Positions 37,501 to 46,001 of a stretch of DNA of 64,000 nt are shown here, piece by piece. The translations under genes were made by a program, and so were the position numbers. Origin of the DNA: Pavona decussata. Lineage: Eukaryota. Positions within the stretch are counted from its first letter, which is position 1. Each line of letters begins with the position of its first letter. A model generated the notes under the pieces. That model was not told where the DNA came from and searched no databases. It saw only the letters and a list, made by a program, of their open reading frames with translations. The stretch covers positions 434,001-498,000 of the forward strand of contig CDRNST010000018.1 in the NCBI GenBank assembly GCA_977016875.1. The letters are read 5' to 3'.

Positions 37501-40500
37501 ACAAGTTCTGAATGGCCATCAAGTCAGGATTTAGGTAAGCCATTCTTTGCCCTTCTCCATCTTTACTGGTGACCCACCCAGGGACTTCATGCTCTGCTTC
37601 TACCGTAACCTGGGTTAAGCCAGTCTTTTCTTTTGTTTCCTTGTCTAAGTTTTTTTCTCTCTTCCTTTCTTCTTGGTTGGTTTTCGTTGCATTTTTATTT
37701 TTGTTTGGTTCTTTGTAGTTGCCCTTCCATTTTTTGGTCCCCTATGGGGCGGCCTTAACTTGGTCGGGTTTGCCGTTGTCTTGCATGGGTCGCCCATCCC
37801 TTTTTTGACCCCTTTGGGGCGACCTTAACTTTCTTCTTTTTTGAAATTGTAGTTATTTGTAGAAGGGTTAGTTCCCTTACTCTTAATTGTTCTTGTTTTA
37901 TTAAAGGGGACAAAGACCCTTTTATTTTTAATAGTGTTATAATCATATTATTTGTAATTGTATTTGTAGTATTAAAGGTGACATACCCTTTAATTTAAAT
38001 AATATTGAAGTATTCGAGGGGTAAAAGACCCTGTCATTTAATAGTTCCTGTGTGTTATTAAAGGAGACAAAGACCCTTCAATTTAATTTAAATAGCGTTG
38101 TTATCTTTTTCTTTGTTATTGTACTTGTAGAATTAAAGGGACAAAGACCCCTTAATTTAAATAATATTATAATTATAAAAGGCCCTTCATTTAATACTTG
38201 TTCCACTTATTAAAGGGGACAAAGACCCTTACATTAAGTTGTATGAAAATCATATTATTATTAGTAGTAGTATTAAAGGGGACAAAGACCCTTTAATTTA
38301 AACAGTTTCATCAGAGGGGTAACAAGACCCTTTGATTTACTTCGTTTTCATTAACTGTGTGTAGCTCCTTGCCATACCTCCCCGTAATAGGAGGACAGTT
38401 ATCATTAAGACGAAGAATTTTCCCTCGTCTTTAAGTGCGGCAAAAATGGTCGAATGTATTACCAGCCATCTTCATGTTTCTAGTGTTGAAGTTGTTTAAA
38501 TTATTCCTGGCCTGTAGGCCAGAATTACTTTTAGGAACCTTGAGGCAAGAACTATGCATGAGTCTTTAAGCAAGATGACAATTGGGGATGTCATCTGTCC
38601 GTTGTACATCCCAAAATACACCTCGCAAGTTATAGCTTACCTTTATCCTTTTGAGAGGGACAATCAATTGGTAAGCAAGGCTTTGTCTGTCCTTGGTACG
38701 GTACAGGATGTCCGTAACGAAGAATGGTCTAACGTTGAGGGTGTCGCTACGGGCACCCGTCTTGTACAAATCGTGCAGCAACATCATATTCCTCGGTTCA
38801 CATCATCGATGGCTTCAAATGTAAGGTTTGGTAGAAGGATCAACCTTTAGAGTGTGATATTTCCCACCAGGGGCACAAGGCCAAAGTTTGTTCTCGAAAG
38901 GGTAAATGCCTCCGTTGCCACCTGGGTGGGCATTTTGTTGTTAATGTCCGAACCCTGCTTGGGTTTGCGAGGATCTTGCCCCTGCAGCTGCTAGTGCTTT
39001 GGCTGCACCATCTTCTGTTGATCCCATTGTTGGTGACACTTCTTCTGTTGATGAGGTGGCTTCCCCTCCTAGTGGTGTTGTTCTGATCCCTGGTGACGGT
39101 GTTCATAGTGTGACTGCCTTTGCTGCACCTCTTCCTGCTTCTGACGCAGTTGCCCCAGCCTCTGTTCCTGTCTCGGGTGTTGCTTTGAGAGATAACCAGT
39201 TGGACGAATTGTCCTCTGATTCCCAACCTGCCAGCCAGAGGTCTTAGTGTGGTAACTCCGTCATGTGATGTCTTTGCGTGTTCTGCAGAGGGTCCTTCCT
39301 AGAGTGACGCCCCTTCTGCACTTATGAATTGTTCACCTTTGCAGTCTTCGGATGTGCCTTCGTCTGGTCCCTCCGAGCCCATGTCTGTTGAACTTTCCTG
39401 TTTGTCCCCTGAGTTGGTTGGATCCCCTGTTGTGGCCTCTGTTTCCTCTGTGGATTCTCTGGCCAATGTTTTGGATCCTTCAAGTTTGCCTCCTGAGGTG
39501 GTTGGTCCTTCTGTTGTGGTGTCAGGTTCCTCTGAGGATTCTTTGGCCAATGTCCTGTCTGTTCCTCCCGATCCTGGTGTTCTGCAGCCTTCATCTGAGT
39601 TGGGTTCTGAAGTTGCTATGGCCTCTGATTCCTCTGAAGACTCTTTGGCCAATATTTCTGAATTTCTGTCACCTGAGTTTGTTGCTCCTCTCTCTCCAGG
39701 GGATGGTCCTTCTCATCGATCTTTCCCTGTGAGTGGGGCTGCTTTGTTCTTGGCAGGAGTCGCCGTCTCCCCCTTCTAAGAAACATAAGATGCTGGCTTT
39801 GCCTTCGGCCATTCCGGTGTGTAGGAGGAAATAGTTGAACCTAAAAATCATCATTGTTCATGGTGGGTTACCTTTTACTTACCCTACTTATGGCTCTTAA
39901 CGTTATTTGCATTAATGTAAATGCTCTTCGTGATTCTTATAAGAGGGCTGGTCTCTTGCAGTATCTTCGTTCCCTTCAGTCTGTTGTTGATGTTGTTTGC
40001 CTTCAGGAGTGTCATTGTTCCTGTGACAGCGAGTGTCAAATGACGTTCCGTTCCTTAAGTTTTTTTTTCTGTTGTGTCCCCTGGCTCTGTCAGGTCTTTT
40101 GGTTCTATAATTCTTTATCGTCCTTCCTTGTCCCTTATTAATTCGTGGTGTGATTCTGATGGTCGTTTTCTTTTCGTGATTCTGTTTTCAGAGTCTGTTC
40201 TGTATATGCCCCTAACAGGAATCCTGCTAGAGACCAGTTCTTTGATGATTTGATCCCCAAAATTGACCCCTCTGTCCCCACCATCCTCGCTGGCGATTTT
40301 GATGCTGCTCTTGATCGCCTTTTGGATAGGGTTGGCTATTCTCCTGATGACACGTCGAGAGAGAGCTCCGTTGTTCTCCGTCGCCTTTTTGACTCTTGTT
40401 GTGCTGAGGATGTGTGGCGCTACCTCCACCCCTCTTCTTCCAGCTTCACCTGGGCCAGGTGGGACCATTCTTGTGCGTCTGGTATTGATCTTTTTGGCGT

Positions 40501-41620
40501 GCCCTTTGCTTGGGCCCCTTTTGTTTCTTCTTGTGATATTGTGTCTTCCCCTTTTTCTGATTATTATGCTTTATTGTTGTCCCTCTCTATTCCCGAAGTG
40601 GTCCCTCATGGCCCTGGTCTTTGGAAGCTTAATGTTTCCTTCTTGGATGATGATGAATATGTTGAGCTCATCACTGACTTTTTGTCTTTGTGGCCTGGTC
40701 ATATGAATTGTTTCCCTACTCTTGCTCAGTGGTGGGATGCAAGGAAGTCGAAAATCAAAGGTCTGACTGTTTCTTTTTGTTCTAATCATTCGAGCCTCTT
40801 CCGTTGGCCCGAACCATTCCAGTCTGGATCGTCTAACGGAACTTGATTTGGAGGCTGCTCGTGGGGCGCAAGTTCACTCTCGTGTTAAATGGACTGAGGA
40901 GGGGGAGTTGTTTTCCTCTTACTTCTTTGGTCTTGAAAAGAAACGTTCTGCTGACGGTCATATTGCTGCTTTGCGTGCTGCGGACGGTTCTCTTGTCTCC
41001 TGTTCTGACGATCTTTGATGTGTTTTTTCGTTCTTTTACCGTGATCTTTTTTAGTCTGAGCCCTGTGACCCCACCGCTCAGTCTGAACTCTTTTCTCATG
41101 ATGCTTCTTCTCTTTCCGATATTGACAATCAGTGTTGTGAAGGCCTCCTCACCCCAAGGGAATGTTAGACCACCTTAAAGGGTATGGCTCATGAAAAGGT
41201 GCCAGGGTGTGATGGCTTCCCCATGGAATTTTATGTTAAGTTTTGGCCTGTGCTTGGTGTTGAATTGGTTCATGTTTTTAATTTTTCTTTTTCTTCTGGT
41301 TTGTCCTCTTCCTCTGAGTGGCGTGGTGTTATTTCCCTTTCCTACAAAAAGGGTGTTCATTTAGATCCTCATAACTGGGGACCTATTACCCTTCTTAATG
41401 TTAACTATAAAATTTCCCGGCAGGCTATCACTGCGCGTCTGTTAAAGCTTCTTCACCTGGTGGTTGAGAGAGACCAATCTTGTGGCGTTCCCGGACGGTT
41501 TATCGGAGAGAATGAGAACTGAGTTAAACTCCTTAGTTTTTAAGTTTCTTTGGTATGGCAAGCGTGATCTTCTTTCAGCATCAGGTGGTCTACCAGCCCA
41601 ATTTTTTTTGGTGCACCCTT
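37500..41620 (+). mobile_element. Tx1-clade element, 'MPPRNRR' family copy 2: long 5'UTR, degraded ORF1 (about 38376) and ORF2 (about 39890, truncated in RT)
   Basis: ORF1 aligns by eye with 10486-11950. ORF2 has CINVNALRD, CLQECH, AGDFD, GLWKLN, PGCDGFPMEFY, DQSCGVPGRFIGEN. Confidence 0.88.
37901..38335. repeat. Array of about 9 hairpin repeats TTAAAGGG-GACAAAGA-CCCTTTAA with AT-rich spacers
   Basis: Copies near 37901, 37973, 38016, 38058, 38133, 38175, 38210, 38273, 38315. Four more near 8076, 8136, 8179 and 10437. Confidence 0.9.
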
Positions 41621-41700
41621 CATTCGTTGGGATAAGTCGGAATGTCTGGTTGGCATTGCACTCCTCAATGGGGTCTTCCATTCGCCTTTAACATAAAAAA

Positions 41701-41715
41701 CGTACCTGACTCGGG
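41701..41715 (+). ncRNA. Degenerate U1 snRNA 5'-end-like remnant between a poly(A) and the next element's 5'UTR
   Basis: AAAAAA|CGTACCTGACTCGGG parallels 57113-57125. Confidence 0.5.
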
Positions 41716-44700
41716 TCAGTTGGCCGAAGCCCTATCCTTTTGTGGAGGGGTTTAGGCTTTTAGTCCTGGGTGAAAATCTCCTCCACGTGCTCTTTGGGAG
41801 TGTTTTGGTGGTTTCCTATTGGCTGGTCGCCCATCCAATTTTTGAATCCACGGATCAGTCCCTAACTTGTGTAGGTGTTCTTTTGCTCACCACAGGGGGG
41901 TTTCCCATCCCTTTTTGGGCCCCACCCATTCAGGCTCAACTTTTTTTCGTCTTTTTTCTTCTTTTTGGGCGTGGCTATGGCCACTAACTCTCGCACTGTT
42001 TCTCTCTGGCAGGGGAAATTTCCCGCTGGTACTAGTCGGGTGGATACTGCCCAGGCAGTTTATCATCGGTTTTCTCCTGTCCATTCCCTGCAATCAATTC
42101 AAGTTCTTCCGGGTGGGATTTGTAAAGTCATGTTTGAATCCCCAGATTCTAAACAGTCAATTGTTGCCCAGCCCATGTGTGTTATTGGAGGTCGAGAGCC
42201 AAGTTTTGAAGTATGTTCTGTGCTCAACCCAAGTCCAGGTTCATTATTTCCCTGATGTTCAACTTCTGTCGACTGAATTGCGCTTTTATGGTGAAATTGT
42301 TAGTTGTCAGCCTCACCATACACCTTATTCCAAAATGGCGGCTGCCTCAGACGATCTGGGTCGAGTAGCACAAAAGAGAGGCATTGAGGGCCACGATTCA
42401 ATGTTTGCATGTTTACATGTGGTAGTATAGTCCGAAAAATGACTCAAAACTGTTGTGTTCCCGGGTGTAACAAAAAGGATGGCGTTAAAATATCTTTCCA
42501 TACGTTCCCTGAAGACAGAGAACTGTTCAGAAAATGGATAGTTGTCATCCGAAGAGATGTTGGCAAAGAGTTTAGAGTGACTGATCATACAAGGGTTTGC
42601 TCAAGCGCTTTAAATCGAGTGATTATCTTACATTACTTACAAGCCGTTAAAAAATGTTAAAACCGACAGAGAGTGCCGTCTATATTTTTTTTGGAAGCAA
42701 GGCTCTCCGGTAAAGAGGAAGTCCCCGAAGAAGAGAAGTCTGAGGCAGCCGCCATTTTGGAATAAGGTGTATTGAGTGCATTTTCCCCGGGATATCCCGC
42801 ATACTTCACAGTTTGGGAGGCATTTTGGGGAGAGCCTCTTGAGTGTGACATTTGTAAGGGCAGCCACAGAGTGGCTGACTGTGAATACTATAACAAATGT
42901 CTTTTCAAGGCTGATGACCATTATGCGAAGGACTGCCCTTATCCATGAAGTGTTGCCCCTAATTCTGCCCCTGCCTCCCCCCCCTACCCCCACCCCCGCC
43001 CCAGCCCCTGCCTTGGCCCCTGTTCCGGCCCCTTCCTCTCTGGCTTCTGGTCTTAGCTCCTTTTCTGAACCTGCTTTGGATGTGGTCATGGATACCTCTA
43101 ATCTGCGATAACCAGCTCGATAGCCTGGTGTCTGTCTCTCGTGCTCTGTCTGACATTGAGGAGGTTGATGAGGCTATCAACCAGAGTATTTTGCCCCCTA
43201 TTGTTAGTGTTACTGATAGTTTAGATGATGTAACTGATAATTTGAATGTTACCGATAATAAAACGAGGCTAACCAACGCTCATATAGTTGTAACTGACAA
43301 AACTGTTACTGATAATGTAGAATGTGGTACCAGTGATCCCGATAGGTCACTGGTAAAGGAAGCACTGATAAAAGTATTGGCAAAGGCACAAGCAAAAAGA
43401 GTACTGTTACCCCTGAAAACTCTGTGGGTGAATTGGAGCTTAGGAAATCTCTGATGTGGATATGGATTCGTTGTCTGGCAAGCGTGCGGCACCAAATGAT
43501 TCATCTGGGCTTGACAGTGTTGACGGCAGTCCTGTGGATCCGTCTCACAGGTGTCCAAGTAAAGTTAAGAAGCCGTCTGTTAACATCTCCGTCAGGGGTC
43601 GGCGTGATGCACATAATCGTTCTTTTGTTGGTAAGGCCCCTGCTACTGGTAAACATTCCTTGCCACAGCAGTCCAAGTCTGTTCCCCTGGAGAGATGATG
43701 GCTCTAGTCTCTGCTGTTCTTCTTCCTTGCCTGATGGCCGTGTCGGTCGTCTCTGTCAACTGTAATGGTCTTCGCGACCCTCACAAAAGATCTGGTTTCT
43801 TGCAGTGGCTGTGTAGTTCTCCGTGTACTATTGATGTGGTTTGAGTTCAGGAGGCTCATAGTGTTTCGTCTGCTGAGTGCCAGTGTTGGTTTTGTTCGTC
43901 TGGTCTGTCTTTCGTTGTGTCTCCTGCATCAAATAAGTCCTGTAGTTGTCTTGTCCTTTTTCGTCCTGCATTGTCCTTTGTTAAGTCATGGACTTATTCC
44001 GATGGTCGTTTTTTTGCAGCCCGAGTTTCAGTTCCATGACTATTTGTTTCCTGTTGTTTCCTTGTATGCTACAAATCCCAACCCTGCAAGGGACAAGTTC
44101 TTTGATCTTGTCTCATCTGTTGACCCTTCTATCACTACGGTTCTCTGTGGGGACTTTAGTACTGTCTTCGATGGTGCGCTGGACCGCTAGGGCTCTGATG
44201 TCTATGCTCCTTCCGTGATAGCAGACTGCACTTGTCCGCCTCTTTGATGAGTGTTACATCATTGATACCTGGCGTTACCTGCATCATTCCTCCTCCCGTG
44301 GAACATGGTTTTAGCCTGATGGTTCCTTGTCTTTGCATATTGATCTCGTTGGTTGTCCTTTTGTGTGGGTGTCTTCTGTCTCATCTTGCATTATTGTTCC
44401 TTGTCTTTTTTCCGATCACTGTGCGTTTTGTTGTGTGTCCATCCCTGATGTCATTCCCCCTGGGCCTGGTTTGTGGAAATTGAATGTTTCGATCCTTGAT
44501 TAGAAGGGTTATGTTGGTGTCATCACAAACTTTTGGGTGGAGAAGCACCAGTTCCCCTCATTAGCCAAATGGTGGGAGGCTGTTAAGTCCAGAATCAAAG
44601 GGATCTCCATCCGTTACTGTTCATCAGGGTCGTCCGCTTTCTCCATAAAGAGAGGCCATCCTGTCGGAGCCGACTTTGCATCTTAAGAAGAAGGTTGATG

Positions 44701-45460
44701 CAGGCATATTGTCTTTGTTCCGGACTTACCAATCTGTCTTGTGTCAGCTGGCTGACCTCGACAAGGAGATCAGGTCTGTGTTGGGTTGAGATGGGGGAAT
44801 TGTCCTCCGCCTTTTTCTTTTGTCTGGAAAAGAAGCGTGGAGCAGACAGTCGGATTTCTGCCTTGTTACTGGATGATGGCACCATTGTCTCCTCTCCAGA
44901 AGAGCTTTGTCAGTCTGTCTGTTCTATCTTTGTCTTTTTTCCCACAGAGCCAACAGATGCGTCTGTGTGGGGTACTCTTTTCCTATGAACGTCCGTTCCA
45001 ATCCCCATAGTTTCCTGTGTCGTTCTCGGGGCCTGTCTCCCATCCCTCAGTATACGGACAATACGTCTCTTGTTGTCATTACTGATGATTCAATCGTGGC
45101 ATGCTTTGAGACTGATGATCTTTAAGAGCAGGGTTCTGGTTCTAAGCTAAATCTGTCTATGTCTAAGGCCTCACGGCTTGGTCCTTGGAGAGGTAGAGTT
45201 GATTCCCCTGTTTCCCTTGATTGGACTTCGTCAAAATTAAAGTTATGGGTGTTTTTATTGGTCCTGGCAATTTGGAAGAAGCCAACTGGAGACCAAGGAT
45301 TCAGGTTGTGGAAATTGTCTTGTGTTCCTGAAGGTAGCACATTCTCCCTTTCAAAGGGGGTGCTCTTGTAATTAATGCTTTAGCCTTGTCCCGGGTTTGG
45401 TATGAAGCCTCGCTTATTTGAATGCCTGCCTGGATTCTTGGTTAGCTATCTAAGCTGGTC
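41716..45460 (+). mobile_element. Tx1-clade element: 5'UTR, ORF1 (ATG 41977), ORF2 (about 43734), degraded
   Basis: SIQVLPGGICKVMF, PLECDIC, CNGLRD, LCGDF, GLWKLN, AFFFCLEKKRG, QYTDNTSL. Confidence 0.85.
42320..42770 (+). mobile_element. Non-autonomous THAP-bearing DNA transposon (ISL2EU/Harbinger-like), 451 bp
   Basis: Perfect TIR ACACCTTATTCCAAAATGGCGGCTGCCTCAGAC flanked by AT. THAP motif CCVPGC...FHTFP...W...VCS. Removing it restores the host ORF1 continuity. Confidence 0.8.
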
Positions 45461-46001
45461 TTCGCTACATGTGGAAGAGGTTGCTGAAAATCCACCGTTT
45501 CGTGAGAACTACACCACTCCACCTACCCGTGAAACCCCTCTTACCGATTTTGTACGACAGCATTTTCATCCAGCGAATATTACACCCGACAGACTCTGTT
45601 TAGCGTATTTTAAGACTGACACTTGCAGCGTGCCAGCATTGATATTAATAACAGTTATTAATAACCGTTGGAAAGATTGCACTGTTCGTTGTCTTTGATT
45701 GTAGTTAAATGAATAATTGCTTGAATTTCCTTGCCATGTATTTTATTTTCACGCCTAAAGGCGCTGGAATTTCATTCAAATGGAGTTTGTGGCGTCTCCA
45801 TTGTTGTTGCCTCGATAATTTGATGTCACAAAGGGTCAATTTAATGTCGTAGGCGAAATTTAAACATTCCTGCCACTCACAAACTCAGACCGCACATACC
45901 GTATTTACTCAAATAAGCGCCGCGGCGCTTATTTAATTTTGCGTTTCTCCTGTGCGGCGCTTATTCGAGGGCGGCGCTTACTTGAGGGCGGCGCTTATTA
46001 A

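Follow-up and report, generated by a model that had tools for sequence, protein, structure and literature searches.

Two dead LINE copies joined head to tail across a scrap of U1 snRNA gene in Pavona decussata, with a conserved AUUGCAC-bearing module in the 3' tail

Introduction

LINEs that insert at a specific target serve as models of how retrotransposons choose a safe site, and as starting points for site-directed gene insertion. For the Tx1 group, the targets named in the searchable literature are the genes for U2 (Keno), U5 and 5S (Mutsu), together with satellites, microsatellites and transposons (Kojima and Fujiwara 2004 via PMC4494074 and PMC3706591). In the searchable literature, U1 has not been reported as a target of Tx1- or L1-type LINEs. 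The elements described as specific for U1 snRNA genes, Dada-U1A and Dada-U1B of zebrafish, are DNA transposons (PMC3706591, PMC8869645). At the level of the element RNA, 'stringent' LINEs have conserved 3' stem-loops, and it is their own reverse transcriptase that reads them (Kajikawa and Okada 2002 via PMC4494074; PMC3472496). The U1A protein, in turn, contacts the heptamer AUUGCAC and its closing C:G pair, both in a hairpin, stem-loop II (SLII) of U1, and in an internal loop of its own pre-mRNA, the purines being the most sensitive positions (PMC2203988). No paper in the searchable literature combines AUUGCAC with retrotransposons.

Here we describe a junction in a window of 64,000 nucleotides of Pavona decussata (positions 434,001 to 498,000 of contig CDRNST010000018.1, assembly GCA_977016875.1); all coordinates below are those of the window, which is the whole stretch of DNA that was analysed. 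The junction, which we call site A (41623-41716), lies between two dead LINE copies arranged head to tail: the decayed 3' end of the upstream copy, a run of six A residues, a scrap of U1 and then the next copy. We put the probability of this reading at roughly 0.88.

Results

The junction at site A

Site A is made up of the following features, the motifs and the A-run being read directly from the sequence.

41623-41694, + strand: conserved 3' tail module of the upstream element (covariance model R1)
41631-41638, + strand: motif GATAAGTC
41652-41663, + strand: motif GGCATTGCACTC
41678-41694, + strand: motif CCATTCGCCTTTAACAT
41695-41700, + strand: A6 tail of the upstream element
41701-41715, + strand: U1 snRNA positions 4-18, CGTACCTGACTCGGG (from the U1 sequence, single-insertion junctions and a pattern search)

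Between 41631 and 41694 the motifs follow one another in the order GATAAGTC..TGTCTGG..GGCATTGCACTC..GGGG..CCATTCGCCTTTAACAT, and the covariance model of the tail matches 41623-41699 with 79 bits, at an E value of about 2e-13. The piece behind the A-run agrees with U1 4-18, CTTACCTGACGCGGG, at 13 of 15 letters, the remaining two being substitutions; by our own arithmetic, the chance of such a match at a fixed position is about 9e-7. A search of the whole window for the U1 4-18 15-mer, allowing up to three mismatches, gave two matches only, each of them directly behind the A-run of a tail. The Rfam U1 model (RF00003) has no match in the window at its gathering score and none around site A at E values up to 10; just 15 nt of U1 are left there, and neither a U1 promoter nor a U1 body survives in the window. 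The heptamer ATTGCAC is found seven times in the window against 9.3 expected and is thus not enriched, so that the weight of the copy at site A comes from its homology and conservation and not from a count. Short-read contigs of two samples (X1 and X2, from one study that is possibly the source of the assembly) cross 41457-41742 without a single difference, and the junction is therefore not an artefact of scaffolding. No RNA run containing the site A locus was found.

The second match of the 15-mer search belongs to a comparable junction further downstream, which we call site B.

57030-57110, + strand: tail of site B (covariance model, 89.7 bits)
57113-57125, + strand: U1 positions 5-17, TTACCTGACGCGG, after an A-run and followed by another 5'UTR

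In a pairwise alignment of site A with 56980-57320 the motif order is preserved, and the homology runs on for about 200 nt past the point where the two elements meet; sites A and B are therefore homologous on either side of that point. The first-pass annotation had read 41620-41715 as a second, divergent copy of the site B junction that is followed by the 5'UTR of a new element. The shared motif order and the tail match bear out the first part, and the second holds as well: the downstream 5'UTR starts at 41716 with TCAGTTGGCCGAAGCCCTATCC..., and from there onward the sequence is 77% identical (blastn) to the 5'UTR that stands behind U1 1-18 at C18:319166, on the window's own contig.

The two dead elements and their surroundings

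The elements on either side of the junction, and the remains of the host locus, are as follows.

37698-41551, + strand: body of the upstream dead element (comparison with other copies by tblastx and blastn)
37698-37842, + strand: upstream element, 5'UTR remnant
about 38392-39091, + strand: upstream element, ORF1-like region
about 39860-40801, + strand: upstream element, APE endonuclease
40806-41551, + strand: upstream element, N-terminal part of the reverse transcriptase (RT)
41535-41610, + strand: upstream element, remnant from downstream of the RT (by-eye comparison of the printed L017 flank with the window sequence)
41716-44967, + strand: downstream dead element (blastn to L058 and to a three-element train)
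41716-42254, + strand: downstream element, 5'UTR
42409-42660: THAP ORF within the interruption of the downstream element (Pfam THAP)
43400-43517, + strand: downstream element, ORF1 remnant
about 43675-44770, + strand: downstream element, APE
to about 44967, + strand: downstream element, start of the RT
45651-45884, + strand: spacer of a U1-5S repeat unit (blastn, 88% identity with the sequence that lies 435-672 nt 3' of a U1 gene)
50833-51061, + strand: continuation of the U1-5S unit (blastn, 77% identical)

The upstream element is without its first 100 nt or so and without a U1 promoter, and it carries many frameshifts. By our by-eye comparison, about 1.4 kb lie between the homologue of 41535-41610 and the tail in another copy, on C101, which indicates a large internal deletion in the upstream element, ending near 41610. 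The downstream element is interrupted at about 42318-42820 by high-copy DNA, whose contig depth is in the thousands, and its 3' part, tail and U1 body are deleted; the covariance model finds no third tail in the window. The second stretch of U1-5S sequence, 50833-51061, extends into the portion of the unit where the 5S gene lies, on the opposite strand, and is separated from the first, 45651-45884, by about 4.9 kb of other DNA. These two pieces of spacer show that the train of elements at site A lies inside a decayed U1-5S unit.

U1 genes and the geometry of insertion

A genome scan with the Rfam U1 model gave 42 scored matches, 41 of them at 157 bits, and the U1 genes lie in tandem arrays of about 1.98 kb on C18 (the contig that holds the window), C332, C501 and C627. 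The species' U1 reads ATACTTACCTGACGCGGGAGG, the start of the gene being ATACTTACCTGACGCGGGAGGTACTG. Genome searches with both junctions led to 18 and 22 places, from which the two ends of the inserted elements can be read. At the 5' junctions, a U1 promoter and U1 1-18 are followed by the 5'UTR, TTRCTTGGCYGAAGGCCCTATCC. At the 3' junctions, the tail and its A-run are followed by CTTACCTGACGCGGGAGG..., that is, by U1 from position 4, at 14 of the 23 distinct tails whose flanks were read, and a whole U1 body stands behind seven of these 14, one of which (on C67) is called by Rfam as a full U1. Terminal copies read tail, A-run, then CTTACCTGACGCGGGAGGTACTG... and the rest of U1. The A-run is about 5-9 nt long in the copies of this genome (G000) and about 14 nt at one train junction of another assembly, L060:5365. 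Complete split U1 genes occur at L053 and L054, each with an insert of 2.09 kb, and at L058, with one of 4.1 kb; all three have the promoter and U1 1-18(20) on one side of the element and U1 from position 3 to the end of the gene on the other, except that in the decayed L058 copy the 3' U1 resumes at position 8. Position 3 of U1 is an A and cannot be told apart from the tail, and the 3' start is therefore position 4 (or 3). Taken together, the 5' and 3' junctions of single insertions give a target-site duplication of U1 4-18, and the piece at 41701-41715 in site A covers exactly this span.

The same first-pass reading had explained the head-to-tail arrays by repeated insertion into U1, with the short U1 piece as the duplication. 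It needed the species' U1 to continue ACTTACCTG with ACGCGG, which it does, and it proposed a search for elements lying between a U1 promoter and a U1 body, which are what L053, L054 and L058 contain; the U1 sequence and the junctions thus support the explanation. Its further expectation about the flanks of other tails holds in part, for the U1-flanked 14, and fails at the other nine of the 23, which have flanks other than U1. Some of these other flanks are fixed in their turn: on C104 both tails share one 13-nt 3' flank, to which Rfam has no match, and the tails on C200 and C8 share a different one. Two sister lineages with fixed flanks of another kind thus retain the AUUGCAC loop, and the tail is accordingly not exclusive to U1 insertions. 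The covariance model finds 63 genomic places in all, some 40 of which are dispersed and lie outside the 23 tails with flanks read.

As we read the junctions, the element's endonuclease would nick the bottom strand of the U1 gene between positions 3 and 4, and reverse transcription would be primed on the short A-run of the element. The 5' end is joined after U1 position 18, or in some subfamilies after position 15, and a nick at 3/4 together with a join after 18 leaves U1 4-18 duplicated. A second insertion into either copy of the 15-bp duplicate could produce the order element, A6, U1(4-18), element. Later decay would have removed the 5' end, most of the RT and the 3'UTR of the upstream element, and the 3' part of the downstream element along with the U1 body, while the U1 piece gained its two substitutions.

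The 14 U1-flanked tails include copies from two other assemblies and seven train junctions, which hold only U1 4-15 up to 4-18 between the elements: sites A and B, three more on the same contig (C18:347k, 420k and 424k), and two at L060 (398 and 5365). Neither the size of the U1 piece nor the start of the 5'UTR is constant among these junctions, which argues for separate events rather than one junction that was copied. The RT fragment of a train copy has 827 relatives at E <= 1e-10, of which the best 120 listed are 55-73% identical, and two contigs that encode RT relatives, in the ENA assemblies ERZ26858540 and ERZ25067879, show the U1 architecture. L059 holds a tail, then U1 and then 5S in reverse orientation; at L060 three elements form a train, the last tail lies directly against U1, and 5S on the minus strand comes next. 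The U1 genes of L059 and L060 differ slightly from those of G000, which indicates that they come from other genomes.

The RNA module of the tail

The tail at site A divides into the following parts.

41647-41654, + strand: 5' arm of the outer helix, UGGUUGGC
41655-41661, + strand: heptamer AUUGCAC
41663-41672, + strand: small hairpin
41673-41680, + strand: 3' arm of the outer helix, GUCUUCCA
to 41694, + strand: conserved end of the tail, CCAUUCGCCUUUAACAU

The covariance model R1 was built from 16 distinct tails and used to align 23. As shown at the level of the family by comparison of the aligned copies, the last 80 nt or so form a conserved RNA module with an outer helix of 8 bp. In the consensus fold AUUGCAC is unpaired on the 5' side of this helix, and a C/G hairpin of 3-4 bp stacks on its 3' arm. 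Over the 23 tails 89.6% of the cells pair, against 81.2% after shuffling (none of 500 shuffles reaches the observed value) and 39-60% when the partner is slid, in an alignment that was fitted to the model and consists of related copies, and so as good but non-independent evidence. Seven of the eight pairs of the outer helix vary on both sides, for example as CAGGC/GCCUG, UGGGC/GCCCA, UGAGC/GCUCG and CAAGC/GCUUG, and the C:G pair adjoining the heptamer is kept in 22 of the 23 tails. The heptamer itself is exactly AUUGCAC in 18 tails, the others having AUUGAAC (two), AUUGUAC, AUUGCAA and AUUGCAU; A1, U2, U3, G4 and A6 are therefore invariant, and only positions 5 and 7 vary. This structured tail is common to subfamilies whose identity elsewhere is only about 75%. 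Most likely, the tail would serve as a cis signal that selects the element RNA for target-primed reverse transcription.

Folding of single sequences gave no signal over shuffles (z from -0.8 to +0.6). At site A, where a 2x2 U.U mismatch interrupts the outer helix and one of its pairs is G.U, ViennaRNA gives a minimum free energy of -18.2 kcal/mol (z -0.8), a mean unpaired probability of 0.15 for the heptamer and a probability of 0.00 for the closing C:G pair, the preferred fold pairing the AUU of the heptamer; across 19 tails, the motif is predicted to be at least 75% unpaired in 10. RNAalifold on the raw MAFFT alignment found nine pairs with little covariation, a poor result that we attribute to a bulged base that shifts the register of the 3' arm, and for this reason the tails were realigned with the covariance model. 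The fold GGC-[AUUGCAC]-UCC..GGG-GUC, drawn by the first-pass annotation, can be drawn at site A but is not the fold that ViennaRNA prefers there. The likeness to the PIE element that went with this drawing stands, at family level, for the motif and the topology of the internal loop, and falls short at site A in having one box and no poly(A) signal.

Several other identities of the tail region were considered and rejected. Rfam searches of both junctions at E values up to 10 gave only noise for a Penelope-like element with a hammerhead or for an HDV-like 5' ribozyme, and a tRNA-like box upstream of the tail, GGGTTCGATYCCCCGG, was not called by ARAGORN. Capture of the tail from U1 was likewise rejected, as local alignment at family level shares only CATTGCACT; for similarity beyond these 9 nt, shuffles score as high or higher in 66 of 2000 cases at site A (the best of three tails) and in 272 and 483 of 2000 for the other two, which is non-significant at family level.

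Discussion

Alternative origins of the junction

The sequence between the two elements at site A can be explained in more than one way. The U1 piece might have arrived on the RNA of the downstream element, as a 5' leader made when a U1 promoter drives transcription from U1 +1, and have been joined to the upstream copy by microhomology or by template switching of the reverse transcriptase. At every full 5' junction the element does begin 18 nt after the start of U1 and immediately under its promoter, from which it follows that a donor transcript would start with U1 1-18, and the junction at L014 reads AAAATACTTACC and could contain U1 1-3; the piece at site A, however, begins at C4 right after the A-run, as all terminal 3' junctions do, which is what a staggered cut predicts, and we consider the leader unlikely as the source of the piece. 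Separately, U1 has an A at positions 1 and 3; the duplication and leader models give near-identical letters and are not mutually exclusive.

Recombination inside the U1 array, as unequal crossing-over or as segmental duplication, in place of a second insertion would draw on a process that does operate here, since U1 arrays amplify inserted units and identical inserts recur along C18 (eight of 2.09 kb, plus two further identical ones). It is nevertheless a very improbable origin for site A: the elements would then be separated by an entire U1 body with its spacer and promoter and not by a 15-nt piece equal to the duplication, the two halves of site A come from different subfamilies (85% identity of the tail with the type at C18:94k and 77% of the 5'UTR with the type at C18:319k), and at the other junctions the U1 piece measures 12, 13 or 15 nt and the start of the 5'UTR varies too. 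As for a chance likeness to U1 and to site B, one could point to the lack of enrichment of the bare heptamer in the window and to single-sequence folding that does no better than shuffles; the E value of the tail match, the match of 13 out of 15 letters at the one place that is fixed by the end of the A-run, and the recurrence of the architecture, seen in over 20 places as well as in other assemblies, leave it a negligible probability, and we regard chance as ruled out by the pattern search, the tail model and the recurrent flanks. The reading that we prefer is thus that of a second insertion into U1 4-18, with the scrap of U1 as the target-site duplication.

Does the tail mimic a U1A binding site?

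Perhaps the AUUGCAC loop mimics stem-loop II of U1, or the U1A PIE, and binds host U1A/SNF, which could bring the element's RNP to the biogenesis or the loci of U1 snRNPs, or could limit polyadenylation. The C preceding the heptamer and the heptamer itself are the same as in the species' own U1 loop, CATTGCACT; the invariance of the purines A1, G4 and A6 and the retention of the closing C:G pair fit the contacts made by U1A (PMC2203988); as in PIE, the motif occupies a single strand of an internal loop; copies in two other assemblies conserve it; and an unrelated LINE tail at a 5S junction in the same window is without it. Weighing on the other side, sister lineages with flanks other than U1 have the motif too, which weakens the link between loop and target, and many copies, site A included, are predicted to pair it. 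The arrangement of PIE proper, with a box on either side of a short helix and a poly(A) signal further downstream, is absent from site A, which has a single box and neither AAUAAA nor AUUAAA between the heptamer and the A-run; a second box occurs only in the sister copies L050, L051 and L052, within a separate stem. LINE ORF2 proteins, moreover, commonly read a conserved 3' stem-loop, so that conservation can be explained without a host factor, and the similarity of the tail to U1 beyond the shared 9 nt is the non-significant one given above. On balance we hold such binding to be less likely than not. That the loop is a working mimic of SLII, with host U1A/SNF aiding access to the target, its recognition or a PIE-like control of the 3' end, is in our view rather unlikely. 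Were it true, a parasite would have taken as its model the protein-binding site of the RNA gene into which it inserts.

Class of the elements and what site A adds

By their domains the elements belong to the L1 superfamily, and in their insertion they behave like the Tx1 group. The relatives and the train copy carry zf-CCHC, Exo_endo_phos and RVT_1 domains (Pfam), CCHC motifs are visible in ORF1 of the element downstream of site B, and among solved structures the best relatives of APE and RT are those of human LINE-1 ORF2p (1.9e-9 and about 5e-15), with R2 at about 3e-6. Sequence-specific insertion into a repeated target is found in the U1 genes of G000 and of two other assemblies.

Site A is an old dead copy, and its worth lies in the independent confirmation that it gives of the insertion geometry and of the letters that are retained in the tail; a clean 15-bp duplication can be read even in wrecks like this one. 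With one nucleotide of U1, the family adds to the targets of LINEs one that is not named in the searchable literature and that is used in at least three assemblies. Covariation supports the tail as a compact module, and the letters left unpaired in its consensus fold are those of the best-studied site of RRM-RNA recognition; the question that the tail poses is whether its reader is host U1A or the element's own protein.

Comparison with known systems

The closest parallels are Keno in U2, Mutsu in 5S and the other target-specific Tx1 LINEs. They too are L1-superfamily elements with an APE and CCHC motifs in ORF1; each inserts at a single, constant nucleotide within a gene for a small RNA that is present in many copies, ends in a short A tail and leaves a duplication of defined extent, and stacked copies occur in both. 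The differences are the target, which here is U1, and the points of cutting and joining, with a nick at 3/4 and a 5' join at position 18. The Dada elements share the target gene and little of the machinery: they are DNA transposons with a transposase and duplications of 6-7 bp, whereas the elements described here have an APE, an RT, an A tail and a duplication of 15 bp. Like the 'stringent' LINEs, the elements have a structured last 80 nt or so ahead of a short A-run, recognition by their own protein being a candidate here. And like U1 SLII and PIE (PMC2203988), the tail, in its consensus fold, presents AUUGCAC behind a C:G pair, as one strand of an internal loop in the manner of PIE, with variation at position 5 of the heptamer, including AUUGUAC in one copy; it differs from both in the extra unpaired letters that follow the heptamer and, at site A, in a predicted fold of its own that hides the motif.

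Sister lineages with other flanks

The covariance model of the conserved 3' tail, built from 16 tails, also recovers copies in the same assembly whose 3' flanks are not U1. Two tails lie close together on one contig, C104:

L051:1325-1405 and L051:1503-1582, minus strand, tail pair, 178 nt apart

Directly behind each of these tails stand the same 13 nt, CTTTACGCAGCGC, and because the flank is identical behind both, the pair suggests a sister lineage with a fixed target of its own and its own stacked copies. Rfam gives no known RNA at this flank; the 13-nt piece may resemble the 5' end of U4 snRNA. The top-scoring tails of the model in this assembly, at 96 bits, belong to two further copies, L043 on contig C200 and L044 on contig C8, which carry the heptamer as AUUGAAC and have in common a 3' flank, CCRACCACCTTCGKGCC..TGAAAATGTGGTCG. 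This flank, which has no Rfam match, is either another fixed target or the product of a duplication.

Beyond these copies, about 40 matches to the tail model are dispersed across many contigs of the assembly, with identical scores recurring among them (17 at 68.8 bits and 5 at 71.4 bits). These matches probably represent a family, young and dispersed or SINE-like, that carries this tail.

Surroundings of the two junctions

Within the dead LINE copy that begins at 41716, 3' of the decayed junction at 41623-41715 (site A), lies DNA of very high copy number, with contig depth in the thousands:

window 42318-42820, high-copy DNA
window 42409-42660, THAP-domain ORF inside it

One contig connects 41927 directly to 43305, as if other copies were without this insert. 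In X5, a run whose label names another organism, one contig follows window 41521-41607 and then passes into unrelated letters, its break falling exactly where tail homology starts at site A.

Just 5' of the 3'UTR at the comparison junction (57030-57125, site B), a different LINE holds an intact 707-aa RT ORF at 54088-56211. About 150 nt 5' of the A-run is a conserved box that resembles a tRNA T-arm, in which ARAGORN finds no tRNA; at site A it is deleted.

window 56962-56985, box GGGTTCGATYCCCCGGTGA; equivalent place in L014, L032, L050 and L052

The U1 tandem repeat unit, of about 1.98 kb, also contains a gene for 5S rRNA, encoded on the strand opposite to U1; this linkage is present in two other assemblies as well (L059, L060).

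L001 (C18:2883-6046), U1-5S repeat unit
window 7958-8072 and 50833-51061, U1-5S repeat unit

The 5' end of the 5S rRNA gene at window 7938-8055 adjoins the poly(A) run of a LINE, in whose tail AUUGCAC is absent. A histone 3' stem-loop lies at 10166-10211.

A second box

Some sister tails have an extra AUUGCAC-type box about 50 nt further 5', within a separate stem of its own:

L050:1440-1560
L052, minus strand
L051

In the copy on contig C382 the two boxes read AUUGCAC and then AUUGUAC, the same pair of variants as the boxes of the polyadenylation inhibition element of U1A pre-mRNA.
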